Origin: Zygnema circumcarinatum SAG 698-1b
Taxonomy: Eukaryota; Plantae; Zygnematophyceae
Assembly: GCA_037447605.1 (NCBI GenBank)
Contig: CM074804.1
Span: 3,449,909-3,513,908, forward strand
Length of the DNA stretch: 64,000 nucleotides
Direction: 5' to 3'
Shown here: positions 19,796 to 57,300 of the stretch, piece by piece
Layout: each line of letters begins with the position of its first letter
Numbering within the stretch: position 1 is the first letter of the stretch
Notes under the pieces: generated by a model
The model's input: only the letters and a program-made list of their open reading frames with translations
What the model was told of the DNA's origin: nothing
Databases searched by the model: none
Position numbers and translations under genes: made by a program

Positions 19796-19828
19796 ATGTG
19801 GCATTGACCTCACGATGGCGATGCCATC
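19796..19828 (+). repeat. Dispersed-repeat motif with GATGGC-N3-GCCATC hairpin (copy 1)
   Basis: atgtggcattgacctcacgatggcgatgccatc matches 53255-53286 (atgtggcattcatctcacgatggcgatgccat) and 43714-43739. Confidence 0.75.
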
Positions 19829-42271: not shown

Positions 42272-42915
42272 AGATATCATGCCAATTGTATCACAATACG
42301 TCAACTCCAGGGCACTTAGTTTTGTTATCGAACTCCCACCAGCATTCATGTACATGCACAAGGTAGGCTTAATCCATTTTCAGTCATTGTCTGACCTTTT
42401 CTTCCAGCCCCCTCTGTGAGCCAGAGGGAGCTTCCCTTGGCATTTCCCTTGCTGTATAAATATGATTTGAACCTTCGTTCTGACACTGGTTCTTGTGGTA
42501 CTGCGAGAAGATGTCCAGTTTTGAAATTTTAAAAACTATTATCGCTATAGAGTTTCCCTTTGCGGTATGAAGCCGTGCCGCGTGTCAGAGATGTCCAGAT
42601 TTGTATCTTTACGGCCAAAACGCATAAGTATTGCAGTTCTCTGTGATTGCACCGCTAACGACGCGAGCGAGCTTGTATATCTCACGGCCCCGAGATATTA
42701 CATACAGCGGGTGTTCGCTTCATCTACAGTTCAGAATCGTAGCTCACCTCAGCCTGCGGTTGAGGCTCACAACTCCAGCATCGAAATCTGAGGGCAAATA
42801 GCGGTGCCGTAGTGTACTGTACAGGTCGGACCATCGGATTAACGATTGGAATGGTATCGAACCATTAGGTCACGGACCATGAGTTGCCAGAAGTTGCCAA
42901 CCATTGGCATAGGAC

Positions 42916-43290
42916 TATAGATCCGTATGTATCAAACGCGTGTATTAATACACTGTATAATACATGCGTATTATACAACATTTTCAAAATACAGTGTATT
43001 TTTAATGTATTTAACGTATTTTTTTTATTTTCGTGGTTAGTTGAACAAAATCTGATTATAATATTGAAATTCCAGCACTTGCCAAGTCACGTCACTTGCC
43101 AAACACTCAACACGTGTGACTTGGCACGTACATGTTCGTACACCTATTCCGTATATGATTTCCGTACGGATATATGTTCCGATTGTACGGCTGTTAACAG
43201 TTGCGTTAAGGTATTATACAGTGTATAATACAGTATTAATACTGTATTATACATTGTATCGAACCTCAAACTGTATAATACGGATCTATA
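42916..43290. mobile_element. AT-rich MITE-like nested inverted repeat
   Basis: Terminal IR tatagatccgtat (42916-42928) / atacggatctata (43278-43290); inner IR atacactgtataatac / gtattatacagtgtat; central hairpin gccaagtcac...gtgacttggc. Confidence 0.55.
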
Positions 43291-43713
43291 CATAGGACAC
43301 AGCCAGCCATTGCCAACGGACCATCGGACCAAGACCATCGGATGCCAGTGGTTGCCAACCATTCCAACGGTTGCAAACCATTGGCCTTAACTTTTGCCAA
43401 AAGTTACAACCATTAGATTCAATGGTTGGCAACCATTGTCTACAGACATTCTGAACGTTACAAACTCTTTTGCTGAGTTTTTATCGTAATATGCAGGATA
43501 TTGGTTGAAGTGTGTCGCTACCATGACACAATATTCGACGAGGATTCAAATCATCTATTCTGTGCGCAACATTTTCCGCTTTTTAGGTAATGATTTATAA
43601 TCATTGCAATGGTTGGAACCGTTGATGGGCGGACTAGTCAACCATTGGCAATCTGGATGGATGGATAATTCAATGATGGATGGATGGTTGGATGCAGAGC
43701 GGGGGGATGATAT

Positions 43714-43739
43714 ATTGAACTCACGATGGCAAAGCCATC
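43714..43739 (+). repeat. Dispersed-repeat motif with GATGGC-N3-GCCATC hairpin (copy 2)
   Basis: attgaactcacgatggcaaagccatc: same stem, loop AAA instead of GAT. Confidence 0.7.
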
Positions 43740-43931
43740 AAACGTACATGAAGGAAATCAACATCGGGAACCAAAGGGAGCGGTCACAATGGACGAAAGG
43801 TCAAAGAAAAAGTTGGATGTCAATGATTAACAATCGTTTAATGGTTGCCAACCATTGGCTTAGAACCCAATAACCCTTGCTAATTGTCGCCACCATTGGA
43901 TGCCAATGGTTGCCAGCCATTGGACGGCCAA

Positions 43932-43962
43932 CCATGCCATGCCATGCCATGCCATGCCATGC
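43932..43962. repeat. (CCATG)6 pentanucleotide repeat in the APRT upstream region
   Basis: ccatgccatgccatgccatgccatgccatgc read directly. Confidence 0.85.
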
Positions 43963-44133
43963 AATGGTCCGACATGGGCAACGCCATATCTAGAGCGTAC
44001 CGTATCGCCAGTGCGGTATGGGCCGTATCGAATAGCGGCTCCATCCCATGTGGTCCCCCCCCTTCCTCCTGCACCACTCTCCCTCAATCCTAACTCCCCC
44101 TTCCCTCCCTCCTGCCCTCTCCGCCCTTCAGCC

Positions 44134-46445
44134 ATGTCCGCCACACAAGCGGGCGATGTCCGCGTGGCGCGCATAGCGGAGTCCGTGCGTGCCATCCCTG
44201 ACTGGCCTATACCCGGTGAGAGCGCTCGCCTGTGCAGGGCACGCTCCTCCATGGCGCCACCTCAGGAAATGGCCCGAGGGAGGATGCTATTGTGCTCGTG
44301 TTGCCGTTTTTGGTCTTTGGCGCTCCACCTGCATTCGAACAGGGCATTTTGAAAGTATGCGAGCAACTTTGCGTGTTTGAATGAGCAGGAATTTTGTTTC
44401 GCGACATTACCACGCTGTTGCTTGATCCTCAGGCCTTCCGCGACACCATCGATATTTTTGTCGAGCGCTACAAGGACTACGGTCTGACTGCTGTGGCTGG
44501 TATGCATAGCCTCTGCACTTGTTTGAGTGGCTGTGGGAAAACATTGGCCTGCATTTCGATCAGGGGATCGTTGTGGTGGCCAATGCAGGGTTGGGGCGCA
44601 CATGTTTACGGACAAAATAAACGAGTTTGCAGACTGGCGTAATCAAGAAGCAAACATTGTTGACAACTTGGAAGGAATAAAGTAACCGGGGTTTATGTCG
44701 ACTGTGCTGAAACCACACGTTCGAGGATCTTTGTATATCAGAGTTAATTAAGGGCCATTCAGCGGAGTTGACTCGTAAATCGTAGGATCTATGGATTTGT
44801 AATCAGTTGAATCATCAGGTGCAATTTGTGCATCTGGTGTAGCCTAGCCTGCCCGACTCTTCAGCGTTGGGGATTTTGAATTAACACCATTTTCGTAAAC
44901 TGCTCTCTTTCATACCGGCGATTCTCGAATTGACAGTGGTGCCGCCCAGAAAACAATTAAATGGACCGACGTGTTGCTGAAGTTTGCAATCACGAAGCGC
45001 CGTCTGCAAGTTATAGCTACAGTATATTTTCAACTTTACTATGCTTGTTTTTCTCGTAAAAAATAGGCCGTCCTTCTTGGATCTATCTAGTAGACACAGA
45101 CAAGGTTATACCTTGAGCAGACATTCGGCACTGAGGCGACATCAGTACACTAGTTACCTTCTGTGAACTATTGCATATTTCACAAATCTACCATCGTCTC
45201 TCCATAGCATATGTTCATTCAGATGCAATTTGGTCTATTAGAAGCATCTTCATTTTTTTTCTGCAACGCTTATTCTTTATGGCCTCCGTGTGCTGTTGTT
45301 CGGCATGCAGGTATAGAAGCACGTGGCTTCATTTTTGGGCCACCGATCGCTTTGGGATTGGGAATCAAGTTTGTCACTCTGCGAAAACCCAAAAAACTTC
45401 CCGGTAAGCCTGGTTGTGATATGCCGCACCTTTCGGGGCTCGTATCTGGTTGACTTCCCTTTATGCAGAGGAGTTCTATTGGTCAAATAGATACAGAGGC
45501 TGATATACTGCGGATGGATGAGCGAGGGCTGTGGAAGTTGTCCATAAGAGATCATGCGAACCGTTTGCAAGATTATGGACTGTATCTTTTTATGGCCTGT
45601 GAAGCAGTTCCTCTTGTAAACCTTTTCACAGCGTATGCCTTTTCTGACCTCCCCCGCTAAACACCAGGCGAGACCATATCCGAGGAGTACGCTTTGGAGT
45701 ATGGAGTAGATAAGATAGAAATGCACAAAGGTGCTGTAGGGCCTGGAGACAAGGTGTTATTGGTGGACGACCTTGTGGCCACGGGTGGTACATTGGGCGC
45801 TGGCATTCGTCTATTGGGTGAGAAGCCGTTTGTGATACGAATGCAATCGCTGTCATGCTGCTGGCATCGCCCTATGCATTCTCTTGCACAACTTGCCCAT
45901 ACAGTTCGACTTGAAGTTCCTGAAGTGCACGCCATCATTTATATCTCAATGCACACTAAGTCTGTATCGTATGCACGCTTGTTGCTCGCTTACCAAGAAT
46001 TGTAAAATCTGTTCCTACCTTTCCTCCGATATGAGAATGGTTGAGTCAGAAAATGATCCACTGAGCCATAAGGCCTGATCCAAAATTTTCTTTTTGTGTC
46101 TCAGCATTTGAAGAGGACACCACGTGCAGCCTTCTTGGATATCAGATATTGCTTGTCTTTGCCATTGCAATGTGTACTGACAGTCAATCTCGTGTCTTTT
46201 TGTGGAGCAGAACGAGCGGGGGCTGAGGTGGTAGAGTGTGGCTGTGTTATCGAGCTGCCTGCCCTCAAGGTATTTTCACTCTTTTCCATTGTCGCTTGGA
46301 GACCCCTTCCCTCCTTTGCCTTAAGGCCACTGAAGTCCACTGCTCTGGTCCGTACCAATGTTTGGAGGCTTTTCTGTTGCTGCAGGGGCGGGAGAGGTTG
46401 GGATCAAAACCACTTTTTGTAGTTCTGGAATTCGACGGTCACTAA
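44134..46445 (+). CDS. APT: Adenine phosphoribosyltransferase, 6 exons
   Basis: [14 protein letters not shown] / [14 protein letters not shown] / [23 protein letters not shown] / [27 protein letters not shown] (PRPP-binding motif) / [16 protein letters not shown] / [19 protein letters not shown]. Confidence 0.96.
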
Positions 46446-50100: not shown

Positions 50101-52267
50101 ACTTTCCACTGCTCTTATCAGCATCCACCTTCACTATCTTTGTGACATGCGAACTTGGCGTCCGGAGTGCACAAATATGGACACAAGGGCAGGCCTTCAG
50201 AGAGCACTCTGACCTCATCAAAAGAAATGATACGATTCATGGTGGAAAGGTTTAGGATAACCTGCAACCCATGTCCTTCCCAAGATTTTTGCACCTCAGC
50301 ATGGCACATGTCTGAGTCTCAGAAACGAAAAGGAAACTGAAAAACCAAAAAAGGCATATAGCTCAACCAAAAAAAAAAAAAAAAAACAAATAGGTTATTG
50401 GAACACTAACTTCCTAAGCAGCCGTACACGACCAGCACTCTAAACACCGTTCAATGGAAGCACAACGATAGGAGCGGATGGTGGCAGGGAGAGGTTCGTC
50501 GCAGCTAGACCTCGTCAAACACAGGTACGCTGCCTCCTACAAGGCCAGTATTCCCGCCCTGAGGCACCACAGCCAAATTCCTCTCTGTGCAATACCTCAG
50601 AACATTGGACACCTGTGGAAGCATTGAGGAGGCGCAGATGATCAGTGACAGGTTAGACTGAATACTCCACTTACATCAACTAGCTTGATACTTGCTCACA
50701 GCCTAGTCCAGATTTTTAAGAGCCAGAACTACTGCTTACAAAAACACTGCCCTTCGGTCCACTACAAAAAAAAAAAGAGGAGATCAACTTGAATATTAAC
50801 AGCGAACTACACTTTTGTGATTGCCTTGTCACTTCAAACGATGTACAATTAATGGCTTTGCTTTAACAAACTGGATTTGCCTGTACCAACTCACACTCCC
50901 CTAGAAACGTGTACATATTGATTTTTTGCTTTTAATGGCACTAATAGAACGATTAAAGCCAAAAACCAAAACAGGAGAATTAAATAACGAGAAATAGTCC
51001 TTGGACTACATATCAATATTGTAGATTTTCAGAACTCATTGTTCATGGGGTATTGAGTCCATTATCACGGAGTCCATCATGCAGCTAAACAACATATCCT
51101 TGTACACTAAGATACGAGCTGAGTCTATTAATTCATAAATTTCCTCACTTCTAAGAAAATCAAACGGCTAAGGAATGCTACTTGCAAACAGAAAGCCTCA
51201 CTCATACTGCTTCACCTTAAGGAAAACCACGCGTAACCGCGTTCTCGACATATTCCAATCCACGACAACCCTTTTCCCCCAAGAAATTTGATAGTGTTAG
51301 TGCCTCTAGCAGACGTCTCCTCCTTTTCACCATCTGAAATTGACATCAAAGAGGTAAAACACACAGATTGCAAAAAAATCTGAAAAGAGCTAAAAAGCTT
51401 AAAACTCCATTAATTAAAACAGAAGTGGTTACATGTCATAAGTTAGGCATATAGCCTTCCTCTATCACCCCTTAAACCTAAATAATAATCCTGAGTTATC
51501 CCAACTCCCATCTCCTTTTGTTTGCTTCAGTGTAGTCAAGCCTTGTGGAGGCTAAGTGGAGGAGGTGGGAGGTAGGATAACTCAAGATTTATTATTCAAG
51601 TTTAAGGGAAGGGTTTAGGTGATAGAGGAAAGCTGTGTGCCTAACTTACCACGTGTAACCACCTCTACTTTTCTAAATGGAGTTTTAGGCTGCTTAGCGT
51701 TTTCCAAAAGTTTTTGCAATGTGCATACTTTATTTCTTTTCATGATGTCATTTAAATGGTGAAAATGAGGGGACGTCTGTAAGGGGCACTAAAACTATCA
51801 AAAGCTAGAGGGAGAGCCCTTACCTCCTGAGTGCTCTGTGGTTTTAGGAGCAGCTTGCTCGCTCCAAAATACTTCCCCATCCAATCACGGTTTGCCACTT
51901 GAAGAACATCGGGGTCTTGCACAACAGCCGACTCGCCGAGGAGTTCTCTGAATTTTGCAACATCGCTCTCGTTCACCACTCCAAAGCGCGGGTCTCGCTG
52001 AAATGCAGCGGCGCCAAAAGTGCGCAGTGCCAAAGGGAACTTCCACTGAGTGCGGTCACAAGAAAAGCTTGCAGGCCGACCAGAAGTTGAAAACTTCTGC
52101 AAAGGCAGGTAAGGCGGGTGCATTGAGGAGGGAGAGAAGCCTGAAGGAGGCAGAAACGAGCTCTCCCCTACGCCTGTCCAAGCCACCATTCTGCGCCAGT
52201 TGCGCCATGCCTGGCCGCCATGCCTGCTACAATTAAACCGCGAAGTGGCCATAGCAGGCGGCAGCAT
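47137..52267 (-). CDS. D2HGDH: D-2-hydroxyglutarate dehydrogenase, mitochondrial (FAD-linked oxidase)
   Basis: Presequence-like N-terminus; [24 protein letters not shown] / [21 protein letters not shown] / [14 protein letters not shown] / [34 protein letters not shown] / [16 protein letters not shown] / YKYDLSVP / [13 protein letters not shown] / [10 protein letters not shown] / [14 protein letters not shown]. Confidence 0.96.
51389..51698. mobile_element. MITE-like fold-back (~310 bp, long imperfect TIRs) in D2HGDH intron 1
   Basis: Left aaaactccatt..agaagtggttacatgt..taagttaggcata..ttcctctatcacc..taataatcctgagttatcc pairs with right ggataactcaagatttattatt..ggtgatagaggaa..tgtgcctaactta..acgtgtaaccacct..aatggagtttt. 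Confidence 0.75.
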
Positions 52268-52443
52268 ATCCCTTTCCCTCGGCTCCTTCCCTTTTCACCC
52301 GCCTGCCCGCCTCCACATTCAAGCAGCCCGCCCGCCCGGGGGAGTCGGGGCAGCAGCCGGTGGTTGCCACGTGGCCCACCCGGCGTCGGCGCGCGACTTT
52401 GGACTTCTGGCGCGGACGCGTGGGATGGGGAGATGCCTGAGGG

Positions 52444-52780
52444 AGTACAACCATTGGCAAGCAATGGTTGGTTGGCCAGTGGTTGCCGGATCGCGGAGGC
52501 GCGAATCGCCGGTTTGAATGACCCGAGCAGAGGAGAGCAGAGGAGAGCAGAGCAGAGGGACCAGCCATTCGAAAAGCTGCCAACCGTTGCCAACAGTACA
52601 ACCATTGGCAGGCAATGGTTGGTTGGCCAGTGGTTGCCGGGTCGCGGAGGCGCGAATCGCCGGTTTGAATGACCCGAGCAGAGGAGAGCAGAGCAGGGAC
52701 CAGCCATTCGAATGGCTGCCAACCGTTGCCAACGGTACAACCATTGGCAGGCAATGGTTGGTTGGCCAGTGGTTGCCGGC
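52444..52780 (-). repeat. Tandem array of 139/151-bp units (left arm, ~2.3 units)
   Basis: gtacaaccattggca recurs at 52445, 52596 and 52735. Confidence 0.92.
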
Positions 52781-52883
52781 CCACTGTGCGCGTGCGTGCG
52801 CCGCGAGCTGGCCCCGCTGACGGGAAGTGAAGGCAATTGGCTCAATTAAACGCGGTATGTAATTTAATATGCACTCTCCACTC

Positions 52884-53004
52884 GTGGTGCGATCATACCT
52901 AGGCTACTACGCCGGATCCCATCAGAACTCTATATCTAAGCGCCTGTGGGTCGGAAAAGTACTGAGATGGGTGACCTCCCGGGACGTCCCGATGTCGCAC
53001 CCAC
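52884..53004 (+). rRNA. 5S: 5S rRNA gene copy, left, more degenerate (possible pseudogene)
   Basis: GTGGTGCGATCATACC..GGATCCCATCAGAACTC..TAAGCG..GTACTGAGATGGGTGACCTCCCGGGA..GCACCCAC, followed by TTTT at 53009-53012 and preceded by an AT-rich TATA-like tract. Substitutions fall near box A, the IE and box C. Confidence 0.85.
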
Positions 53005-53624
53005 GAGCTTTTGTTTCGATTTTGTACGCAATTGGGGGGTTCACGCTTATCCAGTATACGAAAAGTCACTTTTTTCGTGTACTTAAGTCTGAAACCCAAT
53101 GGTGCGACCCAGTCACCCAATCTGGTGATGTCTTTTCACAAGATTTTCGAAACATGAACCATTATCTCCGACTATCATCGACCATAATGGGTCAAAGCAC
53201 GGGTACTTGACATATGGTAATATGGTACTATGCGGCTAACCATGTAAACTGAAAATGTGGCATTCATCTCACGATGGCGATGCCATATTGGCCGATGCAT
53301 GTGGCTGGCATCGCCATCGTGAGATGAATGCCACATTTTCAGTTTACATGGTTAGCCGCATAGTACCATATTACCATATGTCAAGTACCATATTTCCATA
53401 TGTCAAGTACCAAAAAAAAAAAAAAACCCAAGCGTGACCGATTATGGCCGATGATAGTCGGAGATAATGGTTCATGTTTCGAAAATCTTGTGAAATGACA
53501 TCACCAGATTGGGTGACTGGGTCGCACCATTGGGTTTCAGACTTAAGTACACGAAAAAAGTGACTTTTCGTATACTGGATAAGCGTGAACCCCCCAATTG
53601 CGTACAAAATCGAAATAAAAGCTC

Positions 53625-53745
53625 GTGGGTGCAACATCGGGACTTCCCGGGAGGTCACCCATCCCAGTAGTATTCCGACCCACAGGCGCTTAGCTGCAGA
53701 GTTCTGATGGGATCTGGCGTAGTAGCCTAGGTATGATCGCACCAC
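53625..53745 (-). rRNA. 5S: 5S rRNA gene copy, right, close to canonical streptophyte 5S
   Basis: Reverse complement reads GTGGTGCGATCATACCTAGGCTACTACGCCAGATCCCATCAGAACTCTGCAGCTAAGCGCCTGTGGGTCGGAATACTACTGGGATGGGTGACCTCCCGGGAAGTCCCGATGTTGCACCCAC then GAGCTTTT. Helices pair (TAGGC/GCCTG, GTCGG/CCGAT). Confidence 0.9.
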
Positions 53746-53828
53746 GAGCGGAGAGTGCATATTAAATTACATAGCGCGTTTAATTGAGCCAATTGCCTTC
53801 ACTTCCCGTCAGCGGGGCCAGCTCGCGG

Positions 53829-54275
53829 CGCACGCACGCGCACAGTGGCCCGGCAACCACTGGCCAACCAACCATTGCCTGCCAATGGTTGTACTGTTGG
53901 CAACGGTTGGCAGCCATTCGAATGGCTGGTCCCTGCTCTGCTCTCCTCTGCTCGGGTCATTCAAACCGGCGATTCGCGCCTCCGCGACCCGGCAACCACA
54001 GGCCAACCAACCATTGCCTGCCAATGGTTGTACTGTTGGCAACGGTTGGCAGCTTTTCGAATGGCTGGTCCCTCTGCTCTGCTCTCCTCTGCTCTCCTCT
54101 GCTCGGGTCATTCAAACCGGCGATTCGCGCCTCCGCGATCCGGCAACCACTGGCCAACCAACCATTGCCTGCCAATGGTTGTACTGTTGGCAACGGTTGG
54201 CAGCTATTCGAATGGCTGGTCCCTCTGCTCTGCTCTCCTCTGCTCGGGTCCTTCAAACCGGCGATTCGCGCCTCC
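53829..54275 (+). repeat. Tandem array of 139/151-bp units (right arm, 3 units)
   Basis: gtac anchor at 53891, 54030 and 54181. Unit: ccggcaaccactggccaaccaaccattgcctgccaatggttgtactgttggcaacggttggcagc..ttcgaatggctggtccc(tctgc)n..gggtcattcaaaccggcgattcgcgcctcc. Confidence 0.95.
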
Positions 54276-54379
54276 CCGCGACCGCGAGGCGAGGCGAGGC
54301 GCAGGGCGCTCCTCTCCTCTCCTCTCGCGCTCTCGGGACTGAGGGAGCGCGAGCGAGGCTGCTCTGCGGGGGGGGCGGC

Positions 54380-57300
54380 ATGAGGAAAGGGGGGAGCGCT
54401 TCAGGGGAGCCGGCCGTGCCAGAGAGGCAGAGGATCTGGCGGTTCTCCAGCGATGGAGGGGAGAACACCGGAGAGAACAGCAGGAGACGAGGAAGGGAAG
54501 ACTCGGAGGAACATGGCACAGCAAAGAGGTTACGAAGCATGAGTAGGTAGGCGAATTCCTGCATTTTTGCTGCAGCATCACGCTGCCAGATGGCATTCTC
54601 TACCGCCTCTAATACGTAGCCAACCGATGATTGCTGTTCGACCTTCATTCAACTTTAAAGGATTCGACGTTGAGTTCTAGGGCATGAGATAGCCCGTTTA
54701 TTCTTGTAGCAAGTTTGAATTGTTTTTAGGAGGCGCTTCTGATTGTTTTTGGATTCTACAACATGAATAATGCTTTAAAGCTTGTGCCGTGGGCGAACTC
54801 AATCCCAAAATTGGTGTGCGTGCAGGGGTGAGGATGATTACCTGCCAGGCAATATCCTTTCCATCGAATTGAGGAACTTCATGACTTATGACTATATTCA
54901 GGCGGTTCCAGGGCCTCGGCTCAACCTGGTCATAGGGCCTAATGGAACGGGCAAGAGTTCATTGGTCTGCGCTATCTGCATTGGCCTCGCTGGGGAGCCA
55001 AAAGTGAGTCAAGGCGGTGAGAGGGGTGGAGGAGGGAAGTAGAAAAAATGAGAGCAGTCAGCCGTGGCTCTGCCATTGCAATCCAAAATCACAATTGACA
55101 GGCCAGTTAATTCATTTAATGCAGTGGAGGAAGAGCCGTTCTACTTTGTGCCAAGTATGACACCATTGGTGGTCATAAGGTGGCTCGTTGTCAAGCATTG
55201 GCTTTTGACGTTTGACTGCGACGTATTGCAACCATTATCACGGTTAGTATTGCGACTCATTATATGTGGTATTTTTCAGCTGTTAGGAAGGGCCACGAAT
55301 ATCGGTGACTACGTCCAAAGAGGCCACGAAAAAGGAAGGATAAAGATTACCTTGCGTGGACAGTCCCAACATGAGCACATTGAGATAATCAGAGAGATAA
55401 CGACAAACAACAAAACCGAATGGATCGTGGATGGTGAGTTACAGTCCAAACTCAAAAAATATAAATTCATTATCGCCTTTTTATAATTGAAACCTCATTT
55501 TCTTATTATCATTTGGCGCAGGGAAGCCGTCTAGGAAGGAGGATGTGAAACAGCTCATTCACACCTTTAATATTCAGGTCGGGAATTTGACACAGGTGAG
55601 TATTCAGTCTTAGTCGCCTCTCCTGCCCCCGCCCCCCCCCCCCCCTTCTTTTTTTTCTCATTTAACGATTGTTTTCCTTGTTCGTTTATTATCAATGCAA
55701 CGTAGTCAGCTCAAAGAACATCTCAATTTACTTCTGCCTACTGCGTTTGGTGCTTTAGCTTACTTTGCTCTTTCTGCCATGTTGCGTTCAGTTCCTTCCC
55801 CAAGATAAAGTGTGCGAGTTTGCAAAATTATCTTCGACAGAACTACTGGTGGAAACTGAGAAAGCAGTGGGAGACCCTGAGCTTCATCAGCAGCATATGT
55901 CCCTCATAGAGAAGCAGGACAGTCTATCAATACTTGAGACGGTAGGTATATGAATGCCAAAGTCAACAACTTGCAATTTTCCTGTCAGTCAGCATTTACG
56001 AAATCATCATCATTTCTTCAGCCTTGAAAACTTGTGAAGTTTGTGTTGGGCATTTACGATATTCCATGATTTTTTGGTTTAAGTCCAAGGAATATATTAT
56101 CCTAACAATGGTCACTTACCTTAATTCGTGGTATAAAAAATTTTGGAGTCCGTTTCTTATAATCAACATGTTGTCTGCCTGCTGGTGGCAGACAGTCAAA
56201 CAACACGAAGAAACCCTGCATCATCTCAAGACAGAGAATTCCAATCTGGAGAAGGATGTTGAGCGCATGCAAAAGCGTGGTGAATTGCTGAAAAAGGTCA
56301 GCGAAATTTCCGTTTGGGTTTGTTTTGCTACAGTGTTGTGTTGTTGTCCAGACAACTCAATTCTAGATTTCATTTGTCGAGTCATACAGGATGAATTTGG
56401 TACCCTCACACCTTCACAGCGCTACATCTGTTCAAGCAAATGCTTGTCACGTTTTGTATTTTCAGGCCAAGATAATGAAGATGAAAGAGCCTTGGTTGAA
56501 GTATGAAAAGGTGAAGGTGGAGTATTTAGAAATCCAGGAGCAAGCAAAGGAGGCAAAGAATGAGATAAGCGAAGCACACGCGCAATTTTTAGCGTCACAA
56601 GCTCCATTTTTGTAAGTATTTGTTTCAACTCTTCATTTGACAACGTGAGTGATGGAAGGTTTGAACCATGTGAGTACCTGGCCTTGTGTTTCTTCTATTT
56701 CCGCTTTTCATTCCATACGTTGCTACTTATTTATGTCCTAATCTTGATGAACTCAATAAGGGGGCTTTGGTTGCTGTCACTCTCTAATTTATAATGTCTT
56801 TGCCATGCTCTTGCACCACCATCAATCAATTGTTGACTCAATCTTAATATTGGACTCTGATTTGTGCTATTTTTTTCTGAGCTTTTTTTTTTTGAATGGA
56901 TGGTGAGGCTAAGGAAAGAGGAACTGGTCCATTATTCTTGAAAAGGTTTTGAAGCAACTGGTCCATTATTCTCCAAAACCTTTAAAAGCAACTTAAAGCA
57001 ACTTAAACTTTCAAAGCAACTCAACATCAACAACATCCTCCAACTTAACATTTACGCCTGTAAGGTTTTGCTGCATATGCACTGCTGCAGGAAGGCGAAA
57101 GACAAGTTGTTTGCTGCCATTGCTGAAGTCAGCAAAATCAACGCAGAGCTTACATCACAAAAGGAATATCGTACCAAGCTGACAGCTGAAGAAGATGAGC
57201 TGGTTAGCATAACAGTTAACCTCTATTAAGTTCCATTGCTGAGGTGGACTGGGAGGGAGGAGGCTACCTGCGTGGTCATTAGTGCAAATGTGGATCAGTA

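Follow-up and report, generated by a model that had tools for sequence, protein, structure and literature searches.

A near-palindrome of two complete 5S rRNA units between divergent protein genes of Zygnema circumcarinatum, and its possible origin by inverted duplication in place

Here, we describe a chromosomal near-palindrome in the streptophyte alga Zygnema circumcarinatum that carries two convergent, full-length 5S rRNA genes, one per arm, each with its own mirrored array of 151/139-bp repeats, TATA-like tract and T-run terminators. The structure measures 1.74 kb (52444-54185 of the window, the whole 64-kb stretch of DNA analyzed), or 1.84 kb with an extra unit on its right-hand side, and it lies exactly between the transcript starts of two divergent protein genes. 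The near-palindrome is not an assembly artefact, and the small divergence between its arms suggests that it is young. We lean toward the explanation that it was produced by the inverted, in-place duplication of an orphon-type 5S cassette around a hairpin, and we give this a little better than an even chance of being correct.

The 5S genes were called with the Rfam RF00001 covariance model (gathering score 38 bits), and domain matches for the flanking genes come from exon ORFs searched singly. The assembled sequence was compared with short-read (Illumina-based) contigs from three DNA studies (runs X1, X3 and X6) and from one RNA-like run (X15). The features, from left to right, are the following.

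51822-52422, minus strand: first exon and 5′ leader of the left flanking gene, a FAD-linked oxidase, D2HGDH-like (X15 contig)
52444-52779, plus strand: left tandem array, made of a 151-nt, a 139-nt and a 46-nt partial unit and rich in CAACCATTGG-type words
52780-52884, plus strand: left upstream module, with a GC-rich stretch, a CCAAT-type word and a TATA-like tract at 52856-52871
52885-53003, plus strand: left 5S rRNA gene, the divergent copy (Rfam 79.7 bits)
53004-53194, plus strand: left tail; the T-run terminators are at 53009-53023, a mini-hairpin of 25 nt at 53057-53081
53195-53201, plus strand: 7-nt junction between the left tail and the hairpin (arm alignment)
53202-53389, no strand assigned: perfect central hairpin with 84-nt arms and a 20-nt spacer at 53286-53305
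53390-53434, plus strand: 45 nt present in the right arm only, consisting of the second copy of a 22-nt tandem duplication, an A15 run and a short junction
53435-53625, minus strand: right tail with T-run terminators (arm alignment, contigs)
53626-53744, minus strand: right 5S rRNA gene, the canonical copy (Rfam 91.9 bits)
53745-53849, minus strand: right upstream module with a TATA-like tract (alignment, X3 contig)
53850-54185, minus strand: right tandem array, the mirror of the left array (46, 139 and 151 nt)
54186-54283, minus strand: extra, more diverged partial unit, right arm only (unit positions about 43-151)
54381-54544, plus strand: first coding exon of the right flanking gene, an SMC-type ATPase, SMC5-like

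The two arms of the inverted repeat (52444-53194 and 53435-54185) are 751 nt each and 97% complementary, with 19 substitutions, and each arm follows the same order of tandem array, GC-rich/CCAAT module, TATA-like box, 5S gene, T-run terminators and 190-bp tail. The start codons as read here (52267 on the minus strand and 54381 on the plus strand) are 2114 bp apart, and the palindrome takes up 82% of this gap, or 87% when the extra right unit is included. An earlier, sequence-only reading of this DNA had described an inverted-repeat cassette with two convergent 5S genes filling about 80% of the gap; alignment, Rfam matches and short-read contigs agree that the structure is real. Indels are confined to one hairpin-arm junction, where the right arm has 45 nt and the left arm 7 nt, accounting for the 38-nt indel that had been noticed. 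Substitutions are concentrated in the 5S genes, with 9 of 119 sites differing inside them versus 10 of 716 outside, a roughly fivefold difference (Fisher p = 5e-4), and outside the 5S genes the arms are 98.6% identical. The upstream modules of the two arms differ at 3 of 105 sites.

The tandem arrays record the order of events within the cassette. Neighboring 151- and 139-nt units of one arm are only ~91% alike and are separated by a 12-nt indel; between the mirrored arms, a single site of 151 differs in the outer 151-nt units and a single site of 139 in the inner 139-nt units. Unit-specific variants are thus mirrored between the arms, which bears out the earlier suggestion that the cassette was inverted after its units had diverged. 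The mirroring of the arrays holds for the units up to 54185, but the right array runs on with a further, more diverged partial unit, about 0.7 of a unit with no left counterpart, to about 54283, a point that the sequence-only reading had missed. The left end of the palindrome falls at unit position 1 and the right end at about unit position 43, with 98 extra nt.

Centered exactly between the 751-nt arms are inner arms (53202-53285 and 53306-53389) that are 84 nt long, 100% complementary and 20 nt apart. Folded as single-stranded DNA, this hairpin has a free energy of -109 kcal/mol (z = -23). Its perfect arms, asymmetric spacer and central position are those expected of a palindrome seeded by a short inverted repeat, the fold-back anatomy that had been proposed from the sequence; no microhomology was found at the palindrome junctions. 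The inner 32 nt on each side of the hairpin are a dispersed motif, present at ~100 times single-copy depth in the short-read contigs, and an abundant RNA contains a variant of it with one mismatch. Within the window this core of about 32 nt recurs at 19796-19827 and, in degenerate form, at 43712-43741, so that the claim of an apex hairpin shared with two other repeats stands for the core at two sites and fails for the hairpin as a whole. The miRNA precursor MIR6140 (RF04228) was considered for the apex and rejected, as the match scores 96 bits on both strands, below the gathering score of 140, and is a generic long-hairpin match.

Palindromes are a known artefact of long-read data, and one segment of this one, the inner left tail at 53112-53235, has no short-read contig and is present in the long-read assembly only. 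A fold-back chimera of sequencing or assembly, in which only one arm would be real, is nevertheless hardly credible, since the Illumina-based contigs of three studies contain bases specific to each arm as well as the apex, the right-only 45-nt insert and the junctions with the two flanks. An 80-nt contig spans the apex (53256-53335) in X3 and X6, which derive from two 2019 studies, at about single-copy depth. A contig across the right-only insert (53306-53576) is present in X1, X3 and X6, with an A-run one base longer in X1 and X6. Contigs specific to the left arm (52781-52910, 52959-53081 and 52750-52810) carry the left-arm bases with zero differences, and contigs specific to the right arm (53643-53744 and, in X3, 53718-53848) likewise carry the right-arm bases with zero differences. 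At the left flank, contigs in the three DNA runs enter the left array and end at 52490; at the right flank, contigs in three runs start at 54216 or 54246. The argument against a chimera that had been drawn from arm-specific substitutions is therefore confirmed by contigs of both arms. Moreover, the 19 substitutions do not look like errors, with half of them clustered in the 5S genes.

Both 5S copies match the full RF00001 model (positions 1-120). In the left arm, the TATA-like tract occupies -30 to -15 relative to the G at 52886, and T4 runs at 53009-53012 and 53020-53023 lie 6 and 17 nt past the 3′-end of the 5S gene; the tract and the runs are present in both copies. A TATA-like box near -28 together with a downstream T-run are the Pol III signals of plant 5S genes, as in Arabidopsis. 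The right copy keeps helices I-V of the three-way junction and has a canonical minimum-energy fold. In the left copy, additional pairs of helices II/III are broken, and the minimum-energy fold differs from the canonical three-helix junction. At 52932-52935 the left copy reads ATAT; the right copy has GCAG there (53697-53694 on its own strand). An outgroup 5S gene on a Logan contig (L001) is 95.9% identical to the right copy and agrees with it at 8 of the 9 sites at which the arms differ, making the left base the derived one. The right 5S is probably a working type-1 Pol III gene, judging from its sequence. The left 5S appears to be a decaying or variant copy, because its eight derived changes disrupt helices II/III and reach into the internal control region; the decay of the two genes is asymmetric. 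The changes in the left copy most likely go back either to other divergent 5S orphons that converted it in patches or to mutation linked to transcription while constraint was relaxed. The contigs of the RNA-like run X15 gave no coverage of either 5S copy. Elsewhere, a homology search with a spurious ORF spanning the 5S gene and tail matched only foreign 5S loci. The 5S genes of two Logan contigs (L001 and L002) are 96% identical and have unrelated flanks, those of three metagenome contigs (L003-L005) are about 80% identical, and all five are solitary genes without a palindrome.

Copy number distinguishes this cassette from the main 5S genes of the alga. In contigs of the three DNA runs, the 5S core has a depth of roughly 550-2400 times single-copy. 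At an identity of at least 95%, the flanks of the cassette 5S genes are present at about two copies versus hundreds for the 5S core; the depth of the arrays fits the 5-6 units of the locus at 52444-54283, and that of the tails is about 1.2-1.5 times single-copy. At this identity, the arms have the copy number of this locus only. The sequence-only reading had allowed that the cassette might be the ordinary 5S array spacer of the species; with flanks at about two copies at this same identity, the cassette is not the spacer of the main 5S array, in keeping with an orphon. More diverged relatives of the cassette may exist elsewhere in the genome.

The palindrome sits between two genes that are both represented in the RNA-like run. 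The X15 contig of the left gene ends at 52422, 22 nt short of the palindrome, and those of the right gene start within the bin 54228-54351. Over the palindrome itself, for which roles as a source of dsRNA, a cruciform or a Pol III insulator had been suggested, X15 has contigs at the 32-nt core only. A downstream exon of the left gene matches FAD_binding_4 just below the Pfam cut-off, and its exon-1 ORF gave no match by exact look-up or homology search. The right gene has an intron at 54545-54823, spliced from 54544 to 54824 in X15 with GT..AG ends, and its next exon matches the AAA_23 and SMC_N P-loop models. No tRNA genes are present in the 64-kb window. Because the arrays adjoin both transcript starts, and the same kind of array words also fills a promoter region upstream of another gene (42898-43912), it is conceivable that selection keeps the palindrome, with the mirrored CCAAT-word arrays acting as a symmetric bidirectional promoter and the Pol III genes as an insulator. 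In yeast and mammals, tRNA genes are established examples of Pol III genes with barrier activity. Such a role seems improbable here, given that the structure appears young (1.4% arm divergence outside the 5S genes), that one of its 5S copies appears to be decaying, and that the CCAAT-N9-CCACG promoter module, which is not above chance in the 64-kb window, is absent from the palindrome.

How the palindrome formed, like its parent arm and Pol III activity, is something that we infer. Under inverted duplication in place, the starting point would be one complete Pol III cassette at a dispersed ("orphon"-type) 5S rDNA locus of a streptophyte alga. A short hairpin already present would have served as the center about which the cassette was copied in place and in inverted orientation, likely through fold-back primed by the hairpin or through template switching during replication. 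Since the canonical 5S gene and the extra, older-looking outer array unit are both retained in the right arm, that arm is the likelier parent. We prefer in-place duplication to a mobile element because there is no target-site duplication of at least 5 bp at any pair of candidate ends, no inverted similarity in the flanks, and the ends are unequal. No ancestral empty site was found; all three DNA studies carry the palindrome.

A different route to the same layout would be the separate landing of two copies of the 5S cassette, tail to tail, at a hairpin that formed a hot spot. The dispersed 32-nt apex motif does show that the center is a separate repeat, and the two hairpin-arm junctions are unequal (7 nt versus 45 nt). 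Even so, two landings are very unlikely with symmetry that is unbroken from the arrays to the center, unit-specific variants that are mirrored, 98.6% identity outside the 5S genes, and no further copies of the cassette at an identity of at least 95%.

The structure could also be a non-autonomous foldback-type DNA transposon that carries a 5S gene in each long TIR, lies in a bidirectional promoter, and has partly lost its left terminus. Like the foldback elements FB of Drosophila and FARE-type of Arabidopsis, it has inverted arms of subrepeats, unequal arm lengths, a tiny middle and a strong hairpin; tandem subrepeats, unequal in unit number, make up the ends of the long inverted arms, a middle domain is almost absent, and the CAACCATTGG-type words recur in the promoter region at 42898-43912. 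Unlike those elements, it has neither a target-site duplication nor matching termini, its arms are not multi-copy at an identity of at least 95% in the three DNA runs, and there is a complete Pol III gene in each of its arms. The CACAG termini described for the known foldback family of this genome are absent from the palindrome sequence, and a truncated terminus would be odd beside arms that are 98.6% alike. We therefore regard a transposon of this type as possible but doubtful, and the "5S-mobilising fold-back element" suggested earlier is not supported, given the unequal ends, the locus-only arm depth and the missing target-site duplication. Unequal arms of tandem subrepeats are typical of foldback transposons, an observation that counts against the in-place reading.

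In-place duplication around a hairpin has its closest parallels among palindromes seeded by short inverted repeats. In the rDNA palindrome of Tetrahymena, much longer mirrored arms are likewise centered on a short, perfect inverted repeat whose spacer is not palindromic, and the template-exchange palindromes of fission yeast and human fold-back inverted duplications have the same central short inverted repeat. The structure described here differs from these in being small (1.8 kb), interstitial and chromosomal, and no sign of a break point, an extrachromosomal form or junction microhomology was found for it. The extrachromosomal rDNA palindrome of Dictyostelium also holds 5S genes in mirror-image arms, but that element is an 88-kb, multicopy, linear molecule with all rRNA genes, whereas this one is a single-copy, 1.8-kb chromosomal palindrome with 5S genes only. 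Cassandra TRIMs and SINE3 share with it a 5S-related Pol III sequence outside rDNA arrays. The LTRs of Cassandra are direct, with a primer-binding site and a polypurine tract between them, whereas the repeats here are inverted, contain full-length 5S genes, and enclose a hairpin and two tails, and a Cassandra identity was rejected. A SINE of SINE3 type, considered from the A15 run that lies 420 nt downstream of the left 5S gene, was rejected as well: SINE3 has a 5S-derived head without a terminator and a 3′ tail, whereas here T-run terminators directly follow both 5S genes and no target-site duplication is present. The sequence-only reading had rightly set this layout apart from both families.

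Dispersed 5S genes are known from Neurospora and Schizosaccharomyces pombe, and orphons are solitary members of a tandem family. As in 5S orphons, the units here are complete, have their own upstream and terminator signals, stand among protein genes off the main array, and have diverged from the canonical sequence. Unlike the known orphons, they converge on each other as the two halves of a near-perfect palindrome that lies within a bidirectional Pol II promoter. For the green lineage, the normal description of 5S genes is either tandem (S-type) or 35S-linked (L-type) (PMC3692318), and how they move between these two states is the "restless 5S" question. Our search of the literature returned no description of a streptophyte alga with palindromic or foldback 5S genes, and the Zygnema genome paper and its supplements contain nothing on 5S or foldback elements.

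Taken alone, the locus is a single structural curiosity with an unusual layout and candidate roles only; it is also a verified and young palindrome in a chromosome, with complete 5S units that lie within a bidirectional Pol II promoter. If 5S palindromes recur in the genome, they would provide a concrete, datable intermediate for 5S dispersal in a sister lineage of land plants. It is unlikely that the 5S genes of Zygnema circumcarinatum systematically sit in, or generate, fold-back palindromes as a 5S-bearing foldback cassette family (word-rich array, CCAAT module and 5S gene) that spreads, or arises again and again, at promoters. Were such a family to exist, it would explain how 5S genes left their tandem arrays in the algae most closely related to land plants, and divergent gene pairs would gain symmetric promoter or insulator modules. 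The locus further offers a natural test case in two respects, as one mirror copy of the 5S gene appears to decay while the other stays canonical, and as a perfect 84-bp hairpin is stable between two expressed genes. Finally, X1 has the left-arm base at 53496, and the arms therefore still exchange or mutate between strains.

The intergenic region between the two divergent protein genes holds a near-palindrome that extends from ~52444 to ~54283. A repeat search of the window resolves it into arms of 751 nt (52444-53194 and 53435-54185) that are 97% complementary, and an inner pair of 84 nt (53202-53285 and 53306-53389) that is 100% complementary across a 20-nt spacer; this apex hairpin by itself has a predicted fold of -109 kcal/mol as single-stranded DNA. 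Rfam places a full-length 5S rRNA gene in each arm, and the two genes are convergent, which confirms the palindromic 5S pair proposed by the sequence-only reading.

Features of the palindrome; the five arm parts run from the outside inward and are present in both arms
52885-53003, + strand: left 5S rRNA gene, full length, Rfam 79.7 bits (gathering score 38)
53626-53744, - strand: right 5S rRNA gene, full length, Rfam 91.9 bits (gathering score 38)
Arm part 1 (outermost): tandem array of 151 + 139 + 46 nt
Arm part 2: GC-rich module of 105 nt; includes a CCAAT-type word and, at -30 to -15 of the 5S start, a TATA-like tract
Arm part 3: 5S gene
Arm part 4: T4 runs 6 and 17 nt past the 5S end
Arm part 5 (innermost): 191-nt tail with a 25-nt mini-hairpin

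The outer 151-nt units of the left and right arrays are one site apart, as are the inner 139-nt units, whereas adjacent units inside one arm are ~91% alike, with a 12-nt indel between them. Because these array variants are mirrored between the arms, the inversion is later than the divergence of the units, bearing out the proposed order of events. The mirrored layout does not extend to fully equal ends, since the right array continues to ~54283 through a further 0.7 unit, which is more diverged and has no equivalent on the left. The junction between tail and hairpin is 7 nt in the left arm versus 45 nt in the right, where it consists of a 22-nt tandem duplication followed by A15.

Such a structure could in principle be produced by sequencing or assembly, and we aligned Logan short-read contigs of four runs, each from a different study of one organism (DNA runs X1, X3 and X6 and the RNA-like run X15) to 51500-55200. 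The apex is crossed by an 80-nt contig (53256-53335) in X3 (depth 20.5) and X6 (33.2), for which unique-flank depths are ~28 and ~70, respectively, and a contig spanning 53306-53576, including the 45 nt peculiar to the right arm, is found in X1, X3 and X6. Contigs specific to the left arm (52750-52810, 52781-52910 and 52959-53081) and to the right arm (53643-53744 and 53718-53848) carry the arm-specific bases with 0 differences, and contigs from the two flanks run into the arrays on either side. The stretch 53112-53235 is free of any Logan contig, so that the inner left tail is known from the assembly alone. An artefact is very improbable on this evidence; the palindrome is real. At position 53496, X1 carries the left-arm base, making the arms identical there, and X3 and X6 carry the window base; the A-run at 53412-53426 has one additional base in X1 and X6; both are strain-level differences inside the palindrome. 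Because these features vary between runs, the samples do not simply duplicate a single data set. The genome paper (PMC11096116) and its supplements make no mention of 5S or foldback elements, and a literature search found no publication describing palindromic 5S genes in streptophyte algae.

The same alignment puts the 5S core at ~550 to 2400 times single-copy depth; array depth is what 5-6 units at this locus would give, and the tail is at 1.2-1.5 times single copy. Since the parts flanking the 5S gene are at locus-level depth and the core is hundreds-fold higher, the cassette does not serve as spacer in the main 5S array at ≥95% identity; that was the ordinary explanation that the sequence-only reading had set against its own. 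The locus is an orphon-type 5S.

Two short motifs within it are dispersed. A 32-nt core at the inner hairpin ends (53255-53286, mirrored at 53306-53337), a small hairpin in its own right (stem GATGGC...GCCATC), reaches ~100 times single-copy depth in the three DNA runs amid many different neighbouring sequences. It recurs in the window at 19796-19827, with 2 mismatches in 30, and as a degenerate copy at 43712-43741; the whole apex hairpin was not found elsewhere in the window, and thus the claim that the hairpin occurs in two other repeats holds for its core only. In X15, contigs of 31-35 nt with one mismatch to the core have a depth of 500-540, versus 30-86 for the adjoining genes. The motif may represent the terminus of a transposon or belong to an abundant RNA. 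The mini-hairpin (53052-53082, mirrored at 53547-53577) is a low-copy dispersed repeat of 25-31 nt, from which contigs in X1, X3 and X6 exit into several other sequences. Two contigs switch between the palindrome arms at this element.

The 19 differences between the arms are unevenly placed (array 3/336, upstream module 3/105, 5S 9/119, tail 4/191, hairpin 0/84), with 9/119 inside the 5S genes versus 10/716 outside (Fisher p = 5e-4). As outgroup we used a 103-bit 5S gene on L001, a Logan contig of another run with unrelated flanks; the right copy matches it at 8 of the 9 arm-differing 5S sites. The left copy thus has 8 changes where the flank rate predicts ~0.8 on one lineage, a clear excess. 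They include GCAG to ATAT at 52932-52935 and break pairs in helices II/III, and the left 5S has a minimum-energy fold other than the canonical three-way junction, into which the right copy and the outgroup both fold. One copy looks intact and the other is a decaying or variant one. The excess likely reflects either patchy ectopic conversion by other divergent 5S orphons or, in a gene under relaxed constraint, mutation associated with Pol III transcription. L001 (335-453) and L002 (295-413), contigs from two other public runs, each have one isolated 5S gene, at 96% identity to the right copy, with unrelated flanks and no second 5S found within 1.5 kb; in both, the word GACACTTGGC is repeated five times downstream of the gene.

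Arms built of tandem subrepeats in unequal numbers are classic foldback anatomy, and a decayed foldback element that carried a 5S gene would account for them. We consider this origin rather unlikely, as no pair of candidate ends has a target-site duplication of at least 5 bp, the flanks have no inverted similarity, the left end falls at unit position 1 and the right at about unit position 43, and arm depth at ≥95% identity in the three DNA runs is that of this locus only. We lean instead toward an in-place inverted duplication of the orphon cassette; the short central inverted repeat and its spacer have the layout expected of hairpin-seeded fold-back or template exchange. The right arm would be the likelier parent because its 5S is canonical and its array has the additional, diverged outer unit. 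Like other dispersed 5S genes, this one lies outside the main array, but it forms a hairpin-centred inverted pair; the palindrome is an unusual variant that combines a dispersed 5S gene with a hairpin-centred inverted duplication.

X15, although recorded as "DNA?", behaves as RNA, with a splice that joins 54544 to 54824 and has GT..AG ends. The spliced contig confirms intron 1 of the gene on the right (54545-54823). X15 covers the first exon of the left gene up to 52422, 22 nt short of the palindrome, its coverage of the right gene begins in the 54228-54351 bin, and between the two genes it covers the 32-nt core only. These coverage edges place the palindrome exactly between two divergent transcript starts, which would sit only tens of bases apart without it. 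The exons on either side are compatible with an FAD-linked oxidase (left) and an SMC-type ATPase (right), for which the sequence-only reading proposed the names D2HGDH and SMC5.

Array words of the CAACCATTGG type number 24 in the window, versus 1.6 expected, and are confined to the palindrome arrays and to 42898-43912, upstream of an APRT-like gene. A promoter role for the arrays is conceivable, as are putative insulator, dsRNA and cruciform roles for the palindrome. The intergenic region 42840-43980, upstream of the APRT-like gene start at 44136, is dense in GTTGCCAACCATTGG-type words in both orientations and has an apparent nested AT-rich insertion of ~390 bp with inverted ends (~42905-43300); it shares short words with the palindrome arrays and no alignable sequence. 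In the left flank of the palindrome (52356-52383), a G-box-like CCACGTGG lies beside 13 nt that match the array unit; the match may be chance or the remnant of an older unit.
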